A stretch of DNA of 64,000 nucleotides from Setoptus koraiensis (Eukaryota; Animalia; Arthropoda): positions 186,001 through 250,000 of the forward strand of contig CM106586.1 in assembly GCA_048013815.1 (NCBI GenBank). Direction: 5' to 3'. The stretch's first letter is position 1. Each line of letters opens with the position of its first letter. The notes under the pieces were generated by a model. It saw only the letters and a list, made by a program, of their open reading frames with translations. It had not been told where the DNA came from and did no database searches. Made by a program: the position numbers and the translations under genes. Of this stretch, positions 30,048-53,605 are shown piece after piece.

Positions 30048-31088
30048 TCAGTATCTCATACTAGCTGAAGAATAGAAGTGTCTCACGGTTTCTTTGATGC
30101 CAATGTCGATCGATGTAAACTGATATTCTGCTAGATAGGCTCTAAGTTTTTTATTGGATGCAGTTTTTCTCTGTTGTCCATCACTGTAACTTGATTCAAA
30201 CACCAGTTTGATATTGCCATGCCTGATATTATTTTCTTTGTACAAATCTTGAAAACTAGATAATATTTTGAAGGCAAGCTCTTTGATAGTGATCTCATCA
30301 CTCTCATCAACACAAAGGATCAAAGGCTCTGGCTTGTCGTAGTTCTTGAGAGTCCATAACATAAGCTTAGCTAGATCTTTGGAATATAAGAATTGGCGAA
30401 CTGGCTTGCCGGATCCATAAACCGTTAGATGTGTTTCATGTTGGAGATTTTGCTCCGATTCTCTCATCGCTCGATAAGCTTTATGAATCAAACCTGGTAC
30501 CACATGACCTGTGTCTATATTAAAATTATCATATAATCCGTAAATATTACATGGAATCACCGAGGTAAACAAACTTTTTTCTTCCGTGGGTCTAGAAATC
30601 TGATCCAAATTGTATGCACGATTCAGAACATCGATCATCCTCTTGGCATAAGAGTAGCCAAAATTCGAGTCATGAGGAGGACCATCATGGATCATGCTCT
30701 CATCGATGGGATAAGGAGTGTCATCTGGAAAAATACATGTGGACAGACACGATATACACTTTTTCACTCTATATTTGTAACTGAATAATAGAACGTTATC
30801 ATTTATGGATGAATTGATTCGATAAAACTTCAAATTATTCTCTATATTGGCAAATAAGCCTCCAACATGGGCAGCCAAATGAATTACATAAGTGGGCTTG
30901 TAAGTGTCAAATATCTTTTCCGCTTGTTCCGAATCTGTAAGATCTCCATCTTTGGAACTGATGAACTTGAAACTCAATGATTTCACCTGCTCATCATTCG
31001 AGTAGTTGACTTCATCCTCTAAAGACCGGCCCACTAGGCCAGTGCCACCTGTAACCAAGACAACATCCTTCTGGATAGAATTACTCAT
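30048..31088 (-). CDS. GFUS: GDP-L-fucose synthase (FX/TSTA3)
   Basis: VLVTGGTGLVG Rossmann motif, VIHLAAHVGGLF, SCLSTCIFP, YSYAKRM catalytic YxxxK, GSGKPVRQF, SDGQQRKTASN. Intronless. Confidence 0.97.
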   Translation of the reverse strand: MSNSIQKDVVLVTGGTGLVGRSLEDEVNYSNDEQVKSLSFKFISSKDGDLTDSEQAEKIFDTYKPTYVIHLAAHVGGLFANIENNLKFYRINSSINDNVLLFSYKYRVKKCISCLSTCIFPDDTPYPIDESMIHDGPPHDSNFGYSYAKRMIDVLNRAYNLDQISRPTEEKSLFTSVIPCNIYGLYDNFNIDTGHVVPGLIHKAYRAMRESEQNLQHETHLTVYGSGKPVRQFLYSKDLAKLMLWTLKNYDKPEPLILCVDESDEITIKELAFKILSSFQDLYKENNIRHGNIKLVFESSYSDGQQRKTASNKKLRAYLAEYQFTSIDIGIKETVRHFYSSASMRY

Positions 31089-33160: not shown

Positions 33161-34017
33161 GTTAGAATGTTACTCAATTAATATATAGATATATGAATAT
33201 ATATAGAGTGATATATTTTGTTTTTGAATGATATGTGTTGTCGGAATTGAATTATCAAGTGAAGTTAATGTTAGAAATGACTTAGATACAATACAATAAT
33301 AAAGATGATGTAATAGTTGATTATTGTTTCTAATTGTCAATTTCTAACAGCCAATGGCCAGTTGTAGTTGTAGCAATGTCTAATTGAATGTAATAATAAT
33401 GCAAATATTGATAATGTCGAATATATTATAATCTTATAATTTAATGGTGCTTCGAGTGGCTAATAAGCGCTGGTAACAATTGATGTCTAATGTCATCTTG
33501 TGTGACATTGAGACATATTGCATAGTAAGATATTATTAATAAGAATTTATATCCAACTAGCAACGATCATACTATTATGTATAGTAGTGGTAGTTGCATT
33601 TTTATTATAACTGTGTTGCTACAATAAGCCATTGAATTGGCATGGTTGTGCCATGCATTTGTATAATATATTATACAACAAAGAGGACAATAGGTGAACC
33701 GTGGGCCATGGCAGCGGGACCAGTTCGTGGTGATTGTTGCAGCAGCTGCACCATTGGGCCGGTCATGTGCGTACTACTTTTCTCGTACATAGATGGGGCG
33801 ACATATCCCGACCCATTGATCCGATACAATGGTGAGAGTGCGCATGCGCTTGTTAGGCCCGCATCGGCTAATTGTATGATGCGTTTGTCATTTGAGAGTT
33901 TAGTAGTCAATTGTCTCCCCAACGAATAACATCAATACACATACACCACCGATCATCAAGTTGCCTCAAAATAACATAACAACAACAACATTTGTCAACA
34001 ATAACAACAACAACACA

Positions 34018-34320
34018 ATGACCAGCTCAGCCACCATATTAGTGAACACATTTTGTTTAATTTTCATCATATTACAACTAATTAGTGTTGATATATACGC
34101 TTGTGGACCAGGTAGAGGCGGCGGGCGTAGAAGAACATTTCGAAAATATCCACCATTAGTTTACAAGCAACATATACCAAATGTTAGTGAAGACACGCTG
34201 GGTGCTAGTGGGCGCAGCGAAGGAGCTATCCAACGTCAAGACAAGAGATTTAAAGAGTTGGTTGTAAACTGGAACCAAGATATTGTGTTTAGATCCAGCA
34301 CCGATAGAATTATGACACAG
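34018..34320 (+). CDS. hh: Hedgehog exon 1 (signal peptide and start of HhN); gene = join(34018-34320, 40481-40742, 42115-43214), ~554 aa
   Basis: Signal peptide followed by CGPGRG (palmitoylated Cys), basic motif GRRRTFRK, PLVYKQHIPNVSEDTLGASG, DRIMTQ, then donor GTAAG at 34321. Confidence 0.96.
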
Positions 34321-34452
34321 GTAAGCTATTTTGTAGCATGCTGTTTATAGGCCACTCTACTTTGAATTGTTATTCTTCATTCTTTACTTGTCCTATATAA
34401 TATTCTGTTCCATAATGTTGTTCCAGGGTGCATATCTTGGTTGGTGGCCCAT

Positions 34453-34537
34453 TGTGTGTGTGTGTGCGTGTGTGTGTGCGTGTGTGTGTGTGTGTGTTTG
34501 TGTGTGAGTTTGTATGTGAGACAGAAAGAGAGAACAG

Positions 34538-34597
<60 letters not shown>
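34453..34597. repeat. Compound (GT)n/(GA)n microsatellite in hh intron 1
   Basis: GT/GC run then a long GA run. It is the source of several spurious ORFs. Confidence 0.95.
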
Positions 34598-34603
<6 letters not shown>

Positions 34604-34888
34604 ACATCATCTCGGAACAACAACGCTCTTGGCTCACGAGAGAGAAGAAGCGAAAGAGAGTAAAAAAATAACTTCGATTCTTCCTTTCTCTCTCCTTCTC
34701 TATAATCAAGGCGCCACACACACTGCTTTTGTGGCCGACGTTGTTGGCGGTTGTTGGCGGTTGTTGGCGGTGATGTTAATGGTGGCCATTATTATCATTA
34801 GTGTCTCCCATTGCTCATCGTGTAGTACCTGTGATGATGATCACCCAATTCTTCATGCCACAACTGGCATGCTGTTTTCGTTTGACCA

Positions 34889-34932
<44 letters not shown>

Positions 34933-37471
34933 GTCCGCCCATCAGTCATGGGTGCTGAACATGAGAGTGAATGGCATTGTTTGACCATGTTCGAATTACC
35001 ATTTCCAACTTGGTATCGATTTATTTCTATCGCTGTTTCCCTCTCTAACTAGTGGTAATCCAAGTAGTGAGTCATTTTTGATATTAACATTGACCGAAGC
35101 GGCCAACTAACAGCCGACACACAGAGAAAAAGATCACCTAAGAGAAGCGCAGTGCAGCAACAAGTGTGCACTGATTTGCCACATGAAGCCAAAAAGAAGC
35201 GCTCAACAATTGAACACTTGGGTGCTCATTATCTCAATACTACATCTATCTAATGATGATCATGATTCCTCTGCACACTATACGTACATACGCGTATCTC
35301 AATACACACATACATATGCATGGATATATACGCATCCGCATGTATCGGTATATAACGTTAATGTGTACACAGATATGTAAAAGTATGTGGTGACTGGAAA
35401 TTGGACGATGAATCTGGTGAGAGCGTGATTTCAATGCTGCTGCGTGTCCATACAAATACACATATAATGAGAAACAACCGCAGCAATAGAACAAGACGAA
35501 CAAGAGGGAAAAAAGACCCGAGGCTACTTATAGTGTTTAGCTTATTATTACCTGTGTGAGTGTGTATTTGTACGTGTTTGTGCACGAGTGTTGGTTTAAA
35601 TTTATTGGTTCTATAGCTTCTTTCTTGGTTGCTTGGTTTGTTCACTTTTCAACTAAAGATTGTTGCCTTTCACAATGCTCACGCTCATGCTCATGCTCAT
35701 GCTGATGATGACAATCAAAACAACAATAATACATTTGGTGGCATTAGTGGTAGCATTAACCAAAATCAAGCGTGTGACAAATGATGACGATCATTACTAT
35801 TAACAATAATATGATTATTACTACTAATGCTAATTGAACAAACTAAATATAAAATACCTGGAAAAAGAGTGATGAGATTTTCGTTGGACAGAAACAACTA
35901 ACTGGCGAATTACAAGCAGCTATAATCCTCTGTCGTTGTCGTTGCTGCTTCTTGGTCTTCTCATTATTGTTGCTTATCATTTAAATTCTAAAATCAGTGA
36001 CATATCAATCTTAAAACGTAAAACGATGTTTAACTAAAACTACTACCGACTGACCACTAACAAATGGTCAGCAGTAGTAGTGGTGGGAGTAGTGGTCACA
36101 TACAAGCATGACAAGCGCATAGCAAACAATCGGCTCATGGTGCTCAACAGTCACGTTTGATTCTACACACGCACACAATCACAACAACTAACAACAACTA
36201 ACAACAAAAATTAGTTAGTACAACAATTGTAAATATGAGATGCTGTTAAGATCCCATTATCTCTTCTCAAGTCCAATGGGGACCTGACAATGATTGTTGA
36301 GCTGAACTCTCATCCTTTTTCACAATTCGACTTCTTCATTCAATCTTTCATGTGCTACAAATCATTTAATCCAACGTATTTAGTCATGTTAGAATTAATC
36401 ATTAACAACAACCAGCAGCTTCAGTCAGAGAGCCAGCCACATCTTGTTTGTGTCCTGAGACAAATCACGGAAATCATCTTTGTTGTTATATCTCTTCTAT
36501 CGTCTATGCATGCTAGTGCTGGTCTGCAACACACACACACACACACACACCAACAATAGCGCCAACAACATTGCTGACCAATTGTCATATTAGTGACACA
36601 TTTGAATCAGATTATCCCTTGCTTCTTCTTTACCATTCTCAAAAGTTATTATTGCCTTTTATTTCTGCCTGTCACATTGATTGCTACGTCCGTTGCTGAA
36701 TGTTTGGTGTTCGTTTGTATGTGTTCAAGGCCCGTTATTATTTGGCCAACATTGACCAGAATGCTCAGCCAATTCCAGTCAGGCTCTGGTGCCGATGTCA
36801 CCACCATGAACATCATTAGACATTAGCATAATTAGTCTCACCTGACACAATGGCCGCAACCTAACAGCACTATACATTTTATACCAGGTAATAAAATGTG
36901 CGGTGCGTGCTGGTCATAATGACACCGAACACACACACAAACCTAATCAACATTTCATCACTTATATGTATATATATCCAAATCTGATTAATCGCACATT
37001 TTTTCTCTTTTCGACAGCAACCAATAAGCGATCAGTGTGATTTGTCAGTGTCGTTTGTGTTTCTTCCCAATCAAAAAGAACAAAACCGCTTGCTTTCTTG
37101 CGCGCGCGTACCAATTCTCTAAAATGCAAATTAATATCAATAAGGTACAACAAACTTATTTATAACATATATGTACATAGTAGAAAAGAAGCAGTAGAAA
37201 GAAAAGAAGCGGCACCTTGAAAGAACCTTTCTCCTTTAAATAGATGCGAAACATAGAGAGCGCGCATAAGTTAAGTTTAAACAAGAGGTGCAAGTATATA
37301 AGTTGTTGTTGTTTGGTTTTATAAGATATCCATAGACACAGTGTGTCCATGATATATTCTCATATGCACACCAGTTCACACACAGATTATTCGATGTTGC
37401 TTTTCCTCATGCCCATTACCTGTCTATCTACTGACAAGCAAAAACAAATTGGCTTCAAGTTTGCCAATTCT

Positions 37472-37512
<41 letters not shown>

Positions 37513-37985
37513 CTATATACACATGCCTATATTTATATCTGAGAGCGTATATAGTGACTGGACACACACGATGAATTGCATTAAGCTACTCCTGCTGTGC
37601 AAATTATTGGATGATTTAAAAACGATTATCTGTCCAGATTTCACTTGCTACTAACTTACGCGACTCTGGAGCAGCGTGTTTGTTTTTTATTGACCATTTC
37701 CACTTGCTGTCATATTTGCTTGAGATTAAAAACAATATATTCTGCGGCAATTGGTGATTGTGTTCAGTGTCTAGTGGCTAATATTTTATTCAGATATTAT
37801 TATTGAGATTAGAGAGACGGAGAGAAATACTCCTATTCCGATGATAGTGCTTTATGTTGACCACTAAACCAAACCATTAAACACAAGACCACCAACGTAT
37901 GAATATCCGTGCTTTTAATGGCAATACGGCAAATGGTGCTAACATAGGACATAGAAGAAGATTTGAAGTGTATTATTCAATCTAG

Positions 37986-38006
37986 TTTCTCTCTTTCTCT
38001 CTCTCT

Positions 38007-38070
<64 letters not shown>
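37986..38070. repeat. Compound (CT)n(GT)n microsatellite in hh intron 1
   Basis: Directly visible. Confidence 0.95.
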
Positions 38071-38072
<2 letters not shown>

Positions 38073-40480
38073 CGATAGCAATAATCAACCAAATAAAATT
38101 AGATAACTGATGAAAACGAAAGAGATGACCAAGAAAAAGCAGAACAATTCTTCCAAAAGTTACCTTTGTTGTTTCAGTTTTACGTTGAAGTGAAGCACTT
38201 TTTATTAACTCATTCCACCTGGTGTTTATTCGAAAGTCGACAACGTGCATTCCCAATAACCCAATGAGTGTCATAGAGTAATAGTTGACGAGGTAAATAC
38301 TTGACAAATAGAGAAAGAATGAGAGCGCATATGAACTCATAAAGTATGGAGAACTTTACTGTCGGTCATATATCCAAATATTGATTTTTTCACCTCATAT
38401 TTACAGCACAAACACACTTAGAACAAATAGAGAAAGAAGGCAGGGGCGAGAAAATTATGATTGTTGTTGGTGCAATTATAATGTATCTCGGATCTAAATT
38501 CATGCACAACAACTTGCAACGTTTACAAACACTTGTAATTCTTATTCTTATATATATATATTGATCTTATTTCCTCGACTGGCGTCTGAGGACATTTCAT
38601 GTGATCAGATAAAATCATGCAGACATAACTTGTAGAAATACTGTAGTATAGATTTGTACAACCTGTTGATTCGGAGAAGGAATTGTTGAAATTGTTTTGC
38701 TTGTTGTTTACATTCAGTCTTCAGCTGTGGTTGTTGTCATTGTCGTTTAAACTTTCGAACGTTGAATCTTTTATTCTTTCATTATTAAACCAAGCTGAAG
38801 CTTCGATAACTACAAACTAGAATACGAACTATGCACGACAAGATAAACAAGCCTCTTTCTCTCTCACTCATTAGAATAGAACTGTATATATCATTAGGAC
38901 AGTTAAATTATAACAAGTGCTTGGTCAAATATTGAGATGATTGTTTTTTATTTATCTCTATCTCTAGAGATTCCAAGTCACGAGCTGTTGTTAAGTGCAA
39001 GATAATAAGATCTTGTGGCAGTGGTGTTGACTTTATCCTCTTACCTTTTTCTATGGACAAGGTACACACACAATACGATCCTAGTTGGAGAATCTTCCTT
39101 ATGAGATGGAATAGAAAAAATGATAAAACGATTATTGAAAGTTATAACTGACAACTGTGAGTTGGTTGACTGTTGGCCATGATTAGTTAGTTCTGTAGAG
39201 TTAGTGGACATTGTTCGACATTCCGGTATATGCAAAATATCTGGAATGATTTTCATGGGTTGGTTATATATTGATGCTTCAACTATTCATCATGCGCTTA
39301 GTTGAAACTTATCATTTGTTTTCGCCAATGTCGCCTCTAATCTAATTCTGCCGATCTATGTGTTTATACGCATGCACTAATACAGTCAGTTATAAACAGC
39401 AACAGTATATATGACTGACCAGTGAAACGACAGACGGCTGTCGTTTTTACTTTTATCATTTATTGATATGTTGTGTAGACTTGATGTTAGTTAAAGTCGA
39501 AATCGAAGTGGAAGTCGGTGCCGAATTCAAAGAGGAAACAGAAAAAGAACTAATGGAGGATGAGATACCATAAAAAAGTTGATTAGTTTATGTTCGAATT
39601 GATGTTTGATTAGTTGATAAGATGGCGTGATATGACGAATGGGCAGGTAGATGGAAAGAGAAAGAGCGTGATTTTAGTTGATTTATTATCCCACATGTTG
39701 TAGTTGCGGTGACCAACTTACCATGTACTTGTTGCTTCTTATTTCTTGTTCTGTAACTGTGTTCTTTTTCTCTGTGTGTCCACCTCGAACATCTATCTAT
39801 TAATAAGATATAAACTAAAATAACACACACTCAGTTGTTGTACGTGATAGTTATAATGAGATGATGATAAGTAAATAAATACACAATTTTGAAGTTGGTC
39901 AAGATCATTTACTTATTATCATTCATTTGAATCTATCAGCGTCATTACTTTGCTTTTATTTTGTATGTATATTGTAATATCATCATCATTTATTGAATGT
40001 TTCGAACGACGGGATGAGATAAGGAATGACACTCTCAATTAATGCCTATATGACAGCATCATTACAGCTAATGACCATCAATATACTCAATATTCGATAT
40101 TCTCTGACCTATCGCAGCCTCTCAACTGGTGCATGTAAATAATAATAATAAAACGACCACCATCATCAATATACACAACACTACATTTTATTCTTACGAG
40201 TTCTCAACATCTACTTGTAACAGCTCATTCAATTATTCAAATTATAGTCGGCTATACCTTGCCTACCCGTCTGTTGATTCGACTGTCATATCATATCGTG
40301 TAGATGAAAAGTAGACCTATAATCTAAACTACTACCGGTACCATCATCAATCTATCAAACTATAATATTAACCAGTGTCCATTTCTTAATCGTTTTCACT
40401 ATCCATTCCTTCCGTCCCACATGATTGTTTGATTATATCCATGCAAATGAATATAATTATTGTTGTGATTTATATTGTAG

Positions 40481-40742
40481 AGACTAAAAGAAAAACTAAG
40501 CACCCTAGCCATAAGTGTCATGAATCAATGGCCGAATATAAGATTGCGCGTCATTGAAGGATGGAACGAGGAGGGCATGCATGCCATTAACTCATTGCAT
40601 TACGAGGGTAGAGCTGTCGATATCACCACTAGCGATAAGGATAGATCAAAATATGGAATGTTGGCGAGATTGGCGGTAGAAGCAGGATTTGATTGGGTGC
40701 ACTACGAATCCAGGTCCCATATACATTGCTCAGTAAAATCAG
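40481..40742 (+). CDS. hh: Hedgehog exon 2 (HhN core)
   Basis: Acceptor TTGTAG at 40480. [18 protein letters not shown]...[50 protein letters not shown]. Phase-1 donor GTAAGT at 40743. Confidence 0.97.
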
Positions 40743-41591
40743 GTAAGTCAATCATTCATTTATTGTTCAAGTATATCCCATTTCACACTACCTATCTATC
40801 TATTGTTGCTCCATGCATTTATCATATTGTTATAATTGCTTCTATAGGCCACAATATAACTATACCCACTGTGCGCCTTATGTTTACCGCACCACATATC
40901 GACACATACTTACAAACATTTGTAGGATGTGACAAATGGTGACAAATAAGTTGACGAAAAAATTATGCTGAATTTAATTTTCAAACATGAAAATTTGTCG
41001 TTACACTTAATTGAACAGTGTACGCTATTTGTGTTTGGAATTAATTTCAACAATGATCTTTTTCAATTATAGAAAAACACCTTCTTCTAGTGCCTCTTGG
41101 CACATCCGTTGTTATGTTTTCAATGTTTTTTATAACATCAGACATTTTGCTTTATTGATCCCGCCTCTTGGAATTGAATTGAGTATATTGTGGTAAGAAT
41201 TAGAATGTACAATCCAAAACTACAACGGACTATCAGCATTCACTATGCTGTTGATAAATCTTGTTCCAATATGTTGATGATAAATCTTCGGTATTCTTCT
41301 TTTACAGTTCGTTAATTCTATACATACTTCATAACATTGTAGGTGTTTGTCGTATCTTTTATTAGAATCGATTCTATTGACAGCTATATAAACATACTAT
41401 ACACGAATTCCTATAGGTAGTGAGAATACCTATCAATGATATGCATAAGTCTCTCTTATTGAATTTGCATTAATCAGTTGAAGATCCGTTATGATGTCCC
41501 GCTTATGCAGTATCATCGCCGTAGTATCACAAACGCTTGAACAAACACAATAGTACTTGTAGTATTAATCCCCTCGTCCATTGTTATCAAT

Positions 41592-41636
<45 letters not shown>

Positions 41637-42114
41637 GCTGATAGTGAATTTCAACGAGATCCATTTGTCACATTTTCGAGTAGTTTTCAATTGAATTTGT
41701 TCTAAAGTAATTGGATAAACACAAAATAAGTAAACTACTGGAACAACCTATAAATCTATGTGTCTTTATAGGACAATTGAGATCTGTCAATCTTCTTATT
41801 TCGATTGTTTGGTAGATACTGAGTTTCCACATTGAGGGAATCCAATTCTTTCTACCTGTCTACAATGTTCACGATAGATCGCCTGTTAGTGAATGACTTT
41901 TTTTTATTCAATTTTAGAAATTTGTGATTTTTCGATATCATTGAACGACCCTGGTTTCATATAGAGTGGTCAATTCTCAATGTAACGTCCAATTACCTAC
42001 TCTAATCTAACTAGCATCTAGACCAACTAACATCTAGACTAACTAACATCACTATAACCATTAACCGATAATTGCTCATATTTTAAAATTTCCTTTCACT
42101 TTGTCAATATTTAG

Positions 42115-43214
42115 AAAAATCCGATTCAATACGTAACAATGGTTGCTTTGATGGTGCGAGCATTGTTTACACACCAATAGGACCAACATTCATTTCACAA
42201 CTAAGCATTGATGATAAAGTATTGACCGTGAATCCGGACGATGGTAAAGCAAGATTCAGTCCTGTGATGATGTGGCTAGATGTGAATGAGTCTGGCAAGG
42301 ATCTATTTGTTGAACTAACGACCGAATCAAATCTCACTATTAGGTTAACTTCTTCTCATTTAATCTATGTGTCAGATGATTATTATGAGTTAATCACCAC
42401 TGAAGCGTCAACAAATAGCAATACTCAAACAAATCATAATAGAAATAGTGTTTTCACGAACAGTTCTAATAACAATAGCACAGACGAAGACAAATCTACG
42501 CCCAACAATAAGCCAATTATCAATGGTAATGTCAACTCTAAAACAACATCACTATTAGATCAATATACCTACACTACCTATGCCAGAAATGCTATTATTG
42601 GTCAATATTTATTGACCACTACTCTAAAACCCACCGCCAAGTCAAAAGAAGCTAAGCTGCCGACCATGACACAATCAGATAAGGACAGCTATAACTTGGG
42701 TGAATCTGACCAGTTGAACAAAGATTCAATGGTATACTCTTTGATAGAAGATTCGGTCGGTCAACAACCAACCTTTGAATCAGATGATGTCCAGTTACGT
42801 CTCGACAAGATAGCTAGTATCAATTACAATGTTCGACTAGGAATATATGCACCATTGACTCAAGATGGAAATTTAGTTGTAAACTCATTAGTAGCATCAT
42901 GTTACGCTGTCATAAGTGACCAAGATTTAGCTCATCTATCATTCTTGCCAGTAAGATGGTATTATTCTTTGAAAAGCTACATTTTCGATCACATTGTGTC
43001 CGGTGGGTATATGAAAGGTCGTCTCAGCTTTGATCACGATAGAACTCCAGAAATCCATCCACTCCACAATGGCATTCATAGAAATATGGACACACATAAG
43101 GGTCTATCTAATGATAAAGCTCAAGCCCGGGAAAAACAAGTAGGAGTTCATTGGTATCCATCCATACTATATAGATTAGCAAGGATCTTATTACCTACGA
43201 GTTATTTATATTGA
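42115..43214 (+). CDS. hh: Hedgehog exon 3 (G|CF autocleavage site, Hint domain, sterol-recognition region)
   Basis: Acceptor TTTAG at 42114. NNG|CF at 42141-42149, LTSSHLIYV (TxxH), GIYAPLTQDGNLVVNSLVASCYA, LAHLSFLPVRW, GVHWYPSILY. Stop at 43214. Confidence 0.95.
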
Positions 43215-43340: not shown

Positions 43341-44552
43341 TTATCCCCATCCCCTTTGATGAGCATTTGGTTTGCCACCTTTCATGTGTCGGAAGAAATC
43401 ACGAGAATTTCCATAATTATTGGTCTGATAGTCCGGTTTGAAGTGTTTCGTACAATTATGCGTAGAGGTTCTAGCCAAAAGGTCGTTTAGATCGTAAGAC
43501 GTGGGTGCATGTAATGATTCAGCGTGCAGGGTTTGGTCATATTTAAATTTTTCTTTAGCATCAGAGAGGACTTTATATGCCTCCGAAGCTTCTTTGAACA
43601 GTTTTTCTTCAATTCTACGACTCACTACATCAGCGTCTGAGTGCCTATCTGGATGATGCTTTAGTGCTCGGAGTCTATAAGCACGTTTGAGGTCGCCCTG
43701 GGTGAATTCGCGAGGGAGGCCAAGAATTTGATAATAATCCCTCTTTTTAACTCCTTCACATTTATTTCTCCAATGGTGTAGCGCTAATGTATATTCTCTA
43801 TTATTTTTGTCTAATTCACACATGTATTCGTAAGCAATAGTTGCCTCTTCGAATTTCCCAATGAGCCCATAAAGTTCCGCTCTCTTGAGGTAGGCCTTAA
43901 TATAATTGCTATCTAATTTGACGGCCTCGATGCACTCACTGATGGCAACATTGTTCGAGTTTAATTTCGAAAGAGCCATGGCTTTATTGAAATGCAGGAT
44001 AGCCATCATTTGAGTATCATTAATTTCTTTAGCCTCTCTGAGTGCCCTTGAGTACAATTTGAGAGCTTCCTCATAACGATGACTCCTAAAATTGACATTT
44101 CCTTGTTCTTTCAGTGACATCACCATATCACCTCTGGATGGCGGTGAGGATGGTGGTGGTGGTGGTGGTGGCGAGGATGGCGCTGGTGAGGATAATATTG
44201 GTGAGGATAATATTGGTGAGGATGCTAGTGCTGGTGAGGATGCTAGTGCTGGTGAGGATGCTAGTGCTGGTGAGGATGCTAGTGCTGGTGAAGATGATGG
44301 AGGTGAGGATCGTGGAGGTGAGGATCGTGGAGGTGACGAGGATGGTGGCGGTGAGGATAACATTGGTGAGGAGGACAGTGTCTGTTGTGGCGAGGATGGT
44401 GCTGACGACAGCGGTGTTGATGGCGCTGAATCGCGTAATTCAATTAGAATGGGCTCCTTGTCCACGTCCACGGTAACATTTAAGAATTCAACCTCATCGG
44501 TATCCGTATAATCCTCATCATCAATTAATATAGTTTCAGAAATGAAGCTCAT
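43341..44552 (-). CDS. DNAJC7: DNAJC7-like co-chaperone: 3 TPRs and a J domain, with an acidic/hydrophobic N-terminus and Ser-Pro repeat linker
   Basis: LKEQGNVNF..YEEALKLYSRAL, LHFNKAMALSKL, AVKLDSNYIKAYLKRAELY, then KKRDYYQILG...KRAYRLRALKHHPDRH...FKEASEAYKVLSD...YD with HPD intact. The likely start is MSFISET at 44552; the ORF opens at 44615. Confidence 0.8.
   Translation of the reverse strand: MSFISETILIDDEDYTDTDEVEFLNVTVDVDKEPILIELRDSAPSTPLSSAPSSPQQTLSSSPMLSSPPPSSSPPRSSPPRSSPPSSSPALASSPALASSPALASSPALASSPILSSPILSSPAPSSPPPPPPPSSPPSRGDMVMSLKEQGNVNFRSHRYEEALKLYSRALREAKEINDTQMMAILHFNKAMALSKLNSNNVAISECIEAVKLDSNYIKAYLKRAELYGLIGKFEEATIAYEYMCELDKNNREYTLALHHWRNKCEGVKKRDYYQILGLPREFTQGDLKRAYRLRALKHHPDRHSDADVVSRRIEEKLFKEASEAYKVLSDAKEKFKYDQTLHAESLHAPTSYDLNDLLARTSTHNCTKHFKPDYQTNNYGNSRDFFRHMKGGKPNAHQRGWG
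44140..44420 (-). repeat. Coding minisatellite: 18-bp (SSPALA) x4 plus 15-bp (SSPIL, SSPPR) units
   Basis: GATGCTAGTGCTGGTGAG repeated across 44221-44292; GATAATATTGGTGAG x2; GATCGTGGAGGTGAG x2. Confidence 0.93.
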
Positions 44553-44879
44553 TTTAACAATTAGTTGATTATTAATGATAATAATACATACATACATAGA
44601 TATAAAATAATTCAAGTCGATGCACGAAGTGACGAACTCACCTAATGGAAAAAAATTTCATTCGATGCAGTCAAAACAGCTGCGAATGAAACAACTTGCG
44701 CGCAATTCAAATGCACGATAGAAATACATGGTGTCACATTAACTTTGCAATGGATGCTATACAACATGTGCAACAGAACACATGTGGGCTGGATTGCACG
44801 AAAAGGCATGCAGAGGCAGGTCCGATTAGCAAGACTAGTCAAGTTCGATATATCATAATACACAAATAATTGAAAGAAA

Positions 44880-45932
44880 ATGTTTTCTTCTATAAGCTTA
44901 TTGAGGCGCCCCAACGGACTAAATGGATTCATTCAAACAAGAGGAGCAGCCAGGAAGGGCAAGCGTATTAAGGCGGCGATGGAGGCGAGAAAGAAGGCCA
45001 ATGCAAGAAAGGAAGAAGAAAAATTGAATCCGAAGAAAAAGAAGACTCAGCATAACACCGTTAAGGTGGACAAGGGTCAGCTGAGGTTCCTCGATGAATA
45101 TTCGAGAGACTCATTGCCTATGCCACCCCAAGATGATGTCTACTTCATGAGTTCATTCAGGAAACCTAGATTTTCGTTCGAAGAATGTATAGAATTCCAT
45201 CGTCAAGCAGTGCATCCCACAGTTCTAAATCTACCAAATAGTATTGTTGAGGCCAGAATAGAACTCAATTTGAAGCTCAAACAAAAAAAGAAGAAATATA
45301 TAGAAAGGTTTGCTTCTACTTTATGCTATCCTAATTTATTCAACAGCACCTTGAGACCGCGAAAAATTATTGCCTTGTCAAAAGATGATACCGACCAAGT
45401 GGAGGCTAAGAAAGCAGGAGCATTTATTTCTGGCGGAATGGATGTTATCAATCTTCTCAAAACCTCTCAAATTACCTATCGTGATTTTGATTACCTCGTG
45501 TGCCACAACAACATATTACTAGATTTAGCCAATACGAAAGGCATGAGAGCATCTAGTTTTTTCCCGAATAATCAGAGAGGCAATTTCGGAGATGATATTG
45601 TTGCGTTGGTCAAATTCTTCAAGAATGGATTAGATTATGAATTAATCAAAGAGGAAAAAGACAAATCCATTGGCTGTGTTGATTGCGCATTTGGTCGGTT
45701 GGATATGCCGATCGAACACTTAAGAGAGAATATAATAGAATTTATGAAGTCGGTGAATCGATTTAAACCAGTGAATATGGCGGACGATCTGCAGTTCTTT
45801 AATAGAGTCCTAATTAAAACACCCAGCACAAATGAACTGTTTGTGATGAAATTTTGGAACCTCATGGAGGATTATGTCGATCCAGATGAACAAGAAAAAG
45901 AAGAGGAAATTGAAGAGAGTGAAGTCTGTTAA
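44880..45932 (+). CDS. MRPL1: Mitochondrial ribosomal protein L1 (uL1m)
   Basis: Basic presequence-like N-terminus, RGAARKGKRIK, FIEFHRQAVHPTV-type segment, AKKAGAFISGG, CAFGRLDMPIEHLRENI. Ribosomal L1 pattern; intronless. Confidence 0.88.
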   Translation: MFSSISLLRRPNGLNGFIQTRGAARKGKRIKAAMEARKKANARKEEEKLNPKKKKTQHNTVKVDKGQLRFLDEYSRDSLPMPPQDDVYFMSSFRKPRFSFEECIEFHRQAVHPTVLNLPNSIVEARIELNLKLKQKKKKYIERFASTLCYPNLFNSTLRPRKIIALSKDDTDQVEAKKAGAFISGGMDVINLLKTSQITYRDFDYLVCHNNILLDLANTKGMRASSFFPNNQRGNFGDDIVALVKFFKNGLDYELIKEEKDKSIGCVDCAFGRLDMPIEHLRENIIEFMKSVNRFKPVNMADDLQFFNRVLIKTPSTNELFVMKFWNLMEDYVDPDEQEKEEEIEESEVC

Positions 45933-51838: not shown

Positions 51839-53605
51839 TTAGAAATCATCCTCAAATTGAAAAGACTCCGATGAGCAATCCTGATCCAATTCGACGAGCT
51901 GACCTTCTTTCGCATAGCAAGTTTTGATGTACTCAAATAACTCTTGTTTGGGCGAATTTAGTTCAATTGATTTTTGGACACATTCGAAGTACCCTGCTAT
52001 AATATTGTATAGAGTGGAAACGTTTACTCTTCTTTCTATCATATAACAGTATATATCGTAGATTTCTTTTTTCAATTCTTTATTCAAGAAAGTGAAATAT
52101 AGAATGTCTCTCTCGGCTTGGGAAGCTGCCAGTAACTGAATAATAAACTTCAAATGTTTATCTCCGCCAAATGCACCACATCCCCAATTGCCCGTGGCCA
52201 CTGCGATCTTAATGTCATGACATCTTGCTTTGAACCCACAATAAGCTTTGTTGAGTTCTCTATCTATATAGGTTGGCTTGAATTGATTATAATGTGAGGC
52301 CCTTGTGAACATCTTGGCATCCATTGCTACTACTCGATGCATGCGTCGTCTCCAACTATCAACAGGTGTTTCATCGACAAAATTACCCTTCCACCTAAAA
52401 GTATTGGAGTAACCGTCGTAGGTGTTGTATTGTTCAGCACCAGATATGAAAATTACTTCGTAGTCCAGTAGTCTTTCACAGAATAATCTCGATATAATCA
52501 TTTCTGGACAAATAGAAAACATTATCTCTTCTTGTACACAACCATGTGACAATATGCCCCCTCCAATCATTTGATTTGCAAAATCTACTTGGAGCATGCC
52601 GCGACCTTCTTTCTCAATCCTACCGTCCCATGAAATAGACAGTCGGCATAAGGGTTTTTTTGAACATGTCCAGTCAACAGGGTCTTCTTGATTCAGTGGC
52701 ATCCGAGTAAAACTGATAACTCCGATTGGATTTGTGTCGGTAACTCTCTTGAAATAGTTTATAATACATTTTAACTTTTCAGCTTTGCAACTATTGGATC
52801 CGGATAGTAACCTGAGTTTACATTGTTGATTGAAAGAAAAAAAAGTGGACGATTATAGATCATGATACACACAATAACAATCAGAGAGTGGGCCAAAACT
52901 ACACATGTTCAATTAACCAAGCACTTACCTCCAGAAATTAATATCTGGATAATTCTTATATAGAGTAGAGTTTCTTTTTGGAAATAAACATAAAAAAGCA
53001 TTGGCCATTAAACAAGCTACTTGTTTTTGACTTAGGACCAAAGTCTTAGATTTGTTTTGAGATAGCAGTGGCACAGGTTGAGTCACTATTTCTGGTAGAG
53101 ACAATGCGAGCTCAATGATTCTGGGTAGCAAATTTTGAAAAAATTCCAAGGTCATTGTATCACTAACAGAATCTAGTACGTCCCTAAGCACATTAAAGTT
53201 AAATTCGCTATAGGCTGGATTCAAGTGCTTAATGACTTTTTCCAAATGATCAACTGACTCTATTTTGATGCCTCGCAGTTCGGTGTTAATGAGTTGCCAC
53301 TTCCAGGTAGTACCACCATCTTGTCTAGTTATCATATTGGATGAGTCACATGGTAATAAAACAACTTGTCCCTCCTCATCTTGGCTAATGTGTCTGTAGA
53401 ATTTGGGCGTTGGTGACGGGCAGATTGTGTCCACAAGTGGGGTATCGAACAATATCAATAGTCCTTTGTTAGGTTTCAAGGGCTTCAATTTTAGCGGGCA
53501 GTTTGGCCAGCGATTGAGATCGTTAATGCCGAACGGTAGCTCGTCCACATCGATAAATTGAGCTACTCGAGGAGATTGTGAAGAAGACAACAATGAAGTG
53601 TTCAT
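51839..53605 (-). CDS. PARG: Poly(ADP-ribose) glycohydrolase, 2 exons, ~549 aa
   Basis: join(complement 52929-53605, 51839-52811) with a 117-bp GT-AG intron. LQVDFANQMIGGGILSHGCVQEEI (GGG-X6-QEE catalytic motif), RELNKAYCGF, VATGNWGCGAFGGD. Confidence 0.97.

Follow-up and report, generated by a model that had tools for sequence, protein, structure and literature searches.

A stretch of 64,000 nucleotides from Setoptus koraiensis (contig CM106586.1 of assembly GCA_048013815.1, positions 186,001 to 250,000 of the forward strand; hereafter the window, to whose first letter all positions refer) carries a hedgehog (hh) gene on its + strand with three exons, all open, and a product of 554 amino acids. 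Comparison with other Hedgehog proteins indicates that this is probably a functional acariform hh whose binuclear calcium site was dismantled on its own branch, while the zinc centre was retained. The two-calcium site is among the most conserved features of Hedgehog proteins; here a natural ligand appears to be without it, with zinc kept and under strong purifying selection.

By its domains and surroundings the gene is a genuine hedgehog orthologue, in agreement with the original prediction, which had been made from the letters of the window. Pfam HH_signal was matched by exon 1 with 90.5 bits and by exon 2 with 152.8 bits (gathering cutoff 22.1), and Pfam Hint by exon 3 with 148.7 bits (E 2e-43). 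A signal peptide followed by CGPGRG, with the Cys that is palmitoylated in Hedgehogs, is present, as are the Hint-module motifs NNG|CFDG, LTSSHLIY and VASCYAV. Exon structure is conserved and the splice junctions are identical to those of hh in the closest relative found (Logan sample SRR33593474; hereafter the sister species), in which the flanking genes are also the same: a DnaJ gene downstream of hh, and GDP-fucose synthase and an open reading frame (ORF) of ~490 amino acids upstream.

State of the two metal sites

Residues were numbered as in human SHH. Exon 2 residue i was taken as SHH 100+i (alignment to 7e2i_G), the numbering being fixed because exon 2 aligns 1:1 to SHH 101-184 (E 2e-43); exon 1 matched SHH with E 6e-25. 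Positions 34279-34320 encode DIVFRSSTDRIMTQ, i.e. DIVFR-SST-DRIMTQ, which is the reading given in the original prediction together with a four-residue deletion. That deletion was recovered by phmmer against PDB chains of SHH as a 4-residue gap opposite SHH 88-91 (DEEN) or in an equivalent register, and the Pfam HH_signal alignment of exon 1 has 73 residues over 77 profile positions. In the loop, R stands for K87, there is no equivalent of D88, E89, E90 or N91, the next three positions are T92S, G93S and A94T, and D95 is retained. Exon 2 differs from SHH at this site by T125I, D129N, D131E and H133M, with E126 and H134 unchanged. The predicted absence of E89/E90 and the predicted D129N were thus borne out by alignment to SHH, and three of the six calcium carboxylates are lost (E89, E90, D129), D131E is a conservative replacement of a fourth, and two are kept (D95, E126). 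The zinc site had been described as intact, and it is: H140, D147 and H182 are retained together with E176, H180 and C183, the peptidase-like EHHDEHH motif is present at 7/7 positions, and the N-terminal Cys and G|CF are in place.

In mouse numbering the six calcium-coordinating carboxylates are E90, E91, D96, E127, D130 and D132 (mouse E90 = human E89), and all 30 reviewed Hh proteins conserve them, the zinc site being lost in Drosophila (PMC4102407). Typical members of the family carry these six carboxylates with an 8-residue loop, and the S. koraiensis loop has 4 residues. This arrangement characterises the family without being required for membership; parts of the site are also missing from the Hh of Blomia tropicalis and from a spider paralogue, described below.

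Age and rarity of the loop change

The sister species is 97.6% identical to S. koraiensis in exon 2 (L001), 83% in the Hint exon (P0001) and 79% in exon 1 (P0058/L005). Its Hh reads DIVFR-DDENTNA-DRMMTQ and GWDEEGMH, with the loop and D129 present and E131 and I125 already there. Seven more relatives (L002, L003, L006, L008, L009, L010, L011) retain RDDE(R/Q)TGA and/or GWDED, and a maximum-likelihood (ML) tree grouped S. koraiensis, the sister species, L002, L010 and L011 with 100/96 support. Of these changes, the loop deletion and D129N alone belong to the S. koraiensis branch. T125I occurs throughout the clade and also in spider mites, some of the species that carry it having a site that is whole in other respects, and D131E, a conservative change, occurs in the loop-bearing sister and in 6/21 other Hedgehogs. 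The 'coordinated loss across two exons' of the original prediction accordingly shrinks to the loop deletion and D129N; T125I and D131E are both in the sequence and, being common to relatives, carry no weight. Dating by alignment, which had been proposed with that prediction, places the loop deletion as a recent event, later than the divergence from the nearest relative, which keeps RDDENTNA and D129.

Differences between S. koraiensis and the sister in the mature N-terminal domain (HhN) were polarised with three outgroups. All ten that could be polarised were derived in S. koraiensis and none in the sister, and 7/10 fall within positions 88-97 or on 129; the terminal branches of the ML tree are 0.077 for S. 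koraiensis and 0.015 for the sister. At the loop the sister has AGA GAC GAC GAG AAC ACA AAT GCC GAT, and S. koraiensis has TCC AGC ACC in place of GAC GAC GAG AAC ACA AAT GCC, which on comparison of the codons is a net 12-bp in-frame loss plus several substitutions and no single clean event. Selection was estimated between the same two species by the Nei-Gojobori method. Exon 2 gave an omega of 0.028, with 15 synonymous and 2 non-synonymous differences (D129N being one of the 2), the mature part of exon 1 0.117 (gap left out) and the Hint exon 0.27, at synonymous divergence (dS) of 0.28-0.57 across the hh exons; the adjacent GDP-fucose synthase gene, used as a control, gave 0.11 at dS 0.79. 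Purifying selection on the signalling domain is strong, and hh is therefore not a decaying copy.

The rarity of the deletion was assessed on exon 1 sequences from a 90%-clustered database (23 hits) and from a phmmer search against 1.84 billion representatives, of whose 414 hits the best 150 were used. Exactly 8 residues lie between F86 and D95 in 165/165 pattern-matched Hedgehog sequences and also in a further 7 that fell outside the pattern and were checked by eye; P0180 was not placeable. S. koraiensis is the only loop-length variant among the ~172 other Hedgehog exon 1 sequences of this sample (best 150 of 414 plus the clustered set), and it is not a widespread deletion among arthropods; more divergent loop variants may exist among the 264 weaker matches of the exhaustive phmmer search.

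Loops of normal length without the acidic pair at 89/90 were found in several places. The sequence KDKRGTGA or KDKKGTGA, in which both glutamates are replaced by basic residues, occurs in an hh gene of the orb-weavers Nephila, Trichonephila and Larinioides (P0110, P0120, P0121; Nephila pilipes GFS68227.1, Trichonephila clavipes, Larinioides sclopetarius). This gene is probably one of two hh paralogues in these spiders, and redundancy could explain the substitution. The loop is RDKQGTGE in the nematode Soboliphyme, KNTAGNNA in P0059 (Logan SRR18067565, a relative of the S. koraiensis clade; full-length and non-acidic) and KNRRGTNH in the metagenomic fragment P0156. Exon 2 was compared among 21 retrieved proteins that include it. 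Position 129 is D in 18/21, and position 131 is variable (D 10, E 6, G 3, A 1, Q 1). Blomia tropicalis Hh (KAI2810324.1, P0116) has E126Q, D129H, D131G and H134Y; its acidic loop is full-length and the three zinc ligands are kept. P0035, labelled 'sonic hedgehog protein-like, partial [Rhagoletis zephyria]', is 57% identical to it and has the same TQSWHEGN motif plus H180W; by this resemblance it is probably a mite sequence that contaminates a fly assembly. In spider mites the changes are D131G/A and H134F. Judged from these sequences, erosion of the calcium site recurs in Acariformes by different changes each time, and because calcium ligands are lost in other chelicerates too, S. koraiensis is the most extreme case of a pattern and not a singular event. 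The survey corrects the view, drawn from 30 reviewed sequences, that the calcium ligands are essentially invariant.

The same material bears on a second explanation, by which a slightly deleterious or neutral change was fixed by drift in a small inbred lineage, the calcium site being weakly constrained in Acariformes, with nothing co-evolved and no new mode of action. The lesions differ among Blomia (E126Q/D129H/D131G/H134Y), spider mites, P0059 and the orb-weaver paralogue, and the S. koraiensis branch is ~5x longer than the sister's, both of which would fit drift. Against this, the site is intact in eight relatives of the same clade, which shows that it is not generally free of constraint there, and the remaining domain is under very strong purifying selection (exon 2 omega 0.03). 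Drift is possible, although we do not favour it; it concerns the cause of the change and not the mechanism, and is compatible with a dismantled calcium site in a working ligand.

Proposed mode of action and competing explanations

Because the motifs are intact, the precursor would be made and processed as usual, with removal of the signal peptide before Cys29, Hint cleavage at G|CF with addition of cholesterol, and N-palmitoylation. On the S. koraiensis branch the change from RDDENTNA-D to RSST-D removed the carboxylates of E89/E90 and D129 became N, leaving D95, E126 and E131, or 3/6 carboxylates. From the E90A/E91A/E127A and the six-fold calcium-free Shh mutants (PMC4102407, PMC8052667) we infer that HhN has lost the binding of two Ca2+ at physiological affinity. 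In mouse Shh E90A/E91A/E127A calcium was not stably bound in molecular dynamics (PMC4102407), and engineered calcium-free Shh was made, processed and calcium-insensitive (PMC8052667). The acidic, calcium-stiffened loop would be replaced by a short neutral turn. Calcium-free SHH shows electrostatic repulsion and flexibility (PMC4102407); removal of the loop, beyond its neutralisation, would abolish both, which makes a short neutral turn a plausible stable solution. Signalling would presumably use the interface of the lipidated N-terminus with Patched, together with further contacts that need no calcium. Calcium independence of S. koraiensis HhN is plausible on these grounds.

In vertebrates the calcium-site face is contacted by PTCH1, CDO/BOC, GAS1 and HHIP, mutations of IHH at the equivalent residues cause brachydactyly A1, and a role in regulating a latent zinc-peptidase activity has been suggested for the calcium site. 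PTCH1 and the co-receptors use the face at which the carboxylates hold two Ca2+, and this Ca/Zn face is one of the two interfaces with PTCH1 (PMC8660895). Compared with the vertebrate SHH/IHH/DHH N-domains (PDB 3D1M, 6DMY, 7E2I), S. koraiensis Hh is alike in the Cys, the basic N-terminal stretch, the zinc ligands, E176, G|CF and the exon boundaries; it differs in a loop that is 4 residues shorter and without E89/E90, and in D129N, H133M and C102L. Drosophila Hh is its reciprocal, with the zinc ligands lost (EHHTVHY) and all calcium carboxylates kept (PMC4102407), whereas the mite keeps EHHDEHH and loses calcium ligands. Drosophila Hh is an arthropod Hh naturally without one of the two metal centres, as that of the mite probably is, and it still signals. 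Drosophila Ihog does not contact Hh at the calcium site, and its binding needs no calcium (as stated in PMC4102407), so that the argument from CDO/BOC, GAS1 and HHIP, on which the original prediction had drawn, is a vertebrate one and may not transfer. Fly Hh conserves the calcium carboxylates although fly Ihog does not use them.

The engineered calcium-free Shh proteins (E90A/E91A/E127A; E90A/E91D/D96A/E127A/D130N/D132L) had the same ligands removed, and their D130N is the D129N of the mite (PMC4102407, PMC8052667). They are substitutions with loop length kept, whereas in the mite half of the loop is deleted and D95 and E126 are kept. Blomia tropicalis Hh and P0035 are, like S. koraiensis Hh, acariform proteins in which three calcium carboxylates are lost, but there the other half of the site is hit and the loop KDDEGTGA is intact; theirs is an independent erosion, which reaches peptidase-like residues as well as the calcium site. 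The orb-weaver paralogue shares the absence of acidic residues at 89/90; the spider reached this by substitution, with D129/D131 kept (Nephila), and the mite by deletion. Taken together, it may be, with the balance slightly against so broad a claim, that S. koraiensis Hh signals with no calcium on the ligand and the zinc centre kept, and that acariform mites and some other chelicerates dismantled the calcium site several times, independently and differently. If true, the calcium site would be dispensable for core Hh-Patched signalling outside vertebrates. In that case S. koraiensis and its loop-bearing sister would be a matched pair provided by nature, on which the role of the site could be worked out, ready-made for biochemistry and cell assays because the sister Hh differs almost only there.

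A calcium site that survives in reduced form, with one Ca2+ held via D95, E126, N129, E131 and the hydroxyls of SST and with the protein still calcium-dependent, is unlikely. Three carboxylates and one amide oxygen are left, and the replacement residues Ser/Ser/Thr bear oxygen and are not hydrophobic; SHH has one buried high-affinity and one exposed ion (PMC4102407), and partial occupancy is known (PDB 3n1r). The buried ion, however, lies under mouse E90 = human E89 (PMC4102407), and it is this residue and its neighbour that are deleted; the E90/E91/E127 triple mutant lost stable binding in molecular dynamics, and D129N takes away another charge.

The sequence itself was compared with Logan contigs of DNA reads from different studies. 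Contig X1 (~436x) covers 33937-34447 and X4 (~103x) 33900-34447, with 0 differences and no indel calls, so that the read check asked for with the original prediction came out in favour of the deletion. All sampled words of 33950-34400 were present in four runs from four studies. In a further organism (C; X6, X19) the sole contig stops at 34276, 15 bases short of the loop, and the loop itself is uncovered. The matching runs are DNA because depth is flat through intron 1; the read-contig comparison over intron 1 spanned 33900-39899, and exons 1 and 2 stand 6,161 bases apart. The loop sits within one continuous exon and reading frame, six codons upstream of the donor, and no second fragment encoding an acidic loop was found by tblastn and motif scan across the 64-kb window, intron 1 included. 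A micro-exon or alternative splice restoring the DEE loop, which had been named as a possible refutation, was rejected for these two reasons, and a pseudogene was rejected on low omega and intact motifs. That the assembly is in error, that hh is a decaying paralogue or that splicing restores the loop, any of which would fit the lack of any RNA run found to hold the gene and a second-copy search limited to the window, is very improbable in view of exact agreement with independent high-depth DNA, an in-frame deletion within a continuous exon with no alternative loop exon in the window, three open exons with canonical splice sites and low omega, and preserved synteny with the sister's single detected hh copy.

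Several points weigh against a functional ligand with a dismantled calcium site. No RNA run holding S. koraiensis hh was found in the run searches, the matching runs being DNA, and it is conservation that speaks for hh splicing and expression. The search in which no second hh copy was seen covered the 64-kb window only. D95, E126 and E131 persist, and N129 and the Ser/Thr hydroxyls could still hold one Ca2+ weakly. Which signalling contacts still work is inferred.

Features of the locus

The coordinates of hh and of its surroundings are collected in Table 1.

Table 1. Annotated elements of the window (SHH numbering where residues of exon 2 are named)
Feature	Position	Strand	Remarks
GDP-L-fucose synthase	30048-31088		compact gene
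hh exon 1	34018-34320	+	first half of HhN; HH_signal profile 1-77, E 1e-25; donor CAG|gtaagc, phase 0
Signal peptide, residues 1-28	34018-34101	+	within hh exon 1; hydrophobic residues 9-28
Palmitoylation Cys29 of CGPGRG	34102-34104	+	hh exon 1; sequence continues CGPGRGGGRRR
Shortened loop R-S-S-T-D	34291-34305	+	S93-T95 at 34294-34302; stands where SHH has the 8-residue acidic calcium loop (K87-D95)
hh intron 1	34321-40480	+	6.16 kb; many CA/GA microsatellites
CA/GA microsatellites	34448-34608; 34883-34937; 36522-36561		intron 1
hh exon 2	40481-40742	+	second half of HhN; HH_signal profile 78-161; acceptor tgtag|AGA, donor TCA G|gtaagt
Exon 2 calcium-site residues and H134	E126 40556-40558; N129 (codon of D129N) 40565-40567; E131 40571-40573; H134 40580-40582	+	
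Exon 2 zinc centre	H140 40598-40600; D147 40619-40621; H182 40724-40726; E176 40706-40708	+	
hh intron 2	40743-42114	+	boundaries G|gtaagt ... tttag|AA restore frame
hh exon 3	42115-43214	+	end of HhN and Hint/HhC; acceptor tttag|AA; stop 43212-43214; 83% identity to P0001
Autoprocessing site G|CF (GGT TGC TTT)	42141-42149	+	hh exon 3
Low-complexity insert in Hint	42380-42830		N/S/T-rich, ~150 amino acids, between the SSHLIYV and YAPLT motifs
TPR-DnaJ gene	43341-44615	-	just downstream of hh; N-terminal Ser/Pro-rich repeat tract (SSPALA, SSPPRS units)
Ribosomal protein L1, mitochondrial type	44880-45932		compact gene
Poly(ADP-ribose) glycohydrolase	51839-53605		two ORFs (PARG_cat_N, PARG_cat_C)

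The Hint insert is common to S. koraiensis and the sister species but has diverged between them, and a comparable Ser-rich insert is present in spider mites. At 34740-34771, in intron 1, the depth of contig X4 rises to ~6,000 from ~100, with many differing loose ends, and this is probably a short dispersed repeat. A metagenome scan with hh exon 1 found no relatives; traces of S. koraiensis sequence occur in air metagenomes.

The neighbouring genes are compact, mostly with few or no introns. In the compact genomes L002, L003, L009, L010 and L011 the gene order is prefoldin, hh, zf-CCCH/RRM, adenylate kinase, Arf, ZPR1, unlike S. koraiensis and the sister, in which hh is followed by DnaJ; the locus was thus rearranged in the common ancestor of these two. 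The GDP-L-fucose synthase is 85% identical to that of the sister and only 52-59% identical to those of named mites (the oribatids Medioppia and Oppia, the astigmatids Tyrophagus and Sarcoptes, and the trombidiforms Tetranychus, Halotydeus and Dinothrombium), which points to an acariform lineage of which the database has no closely related annotated member.

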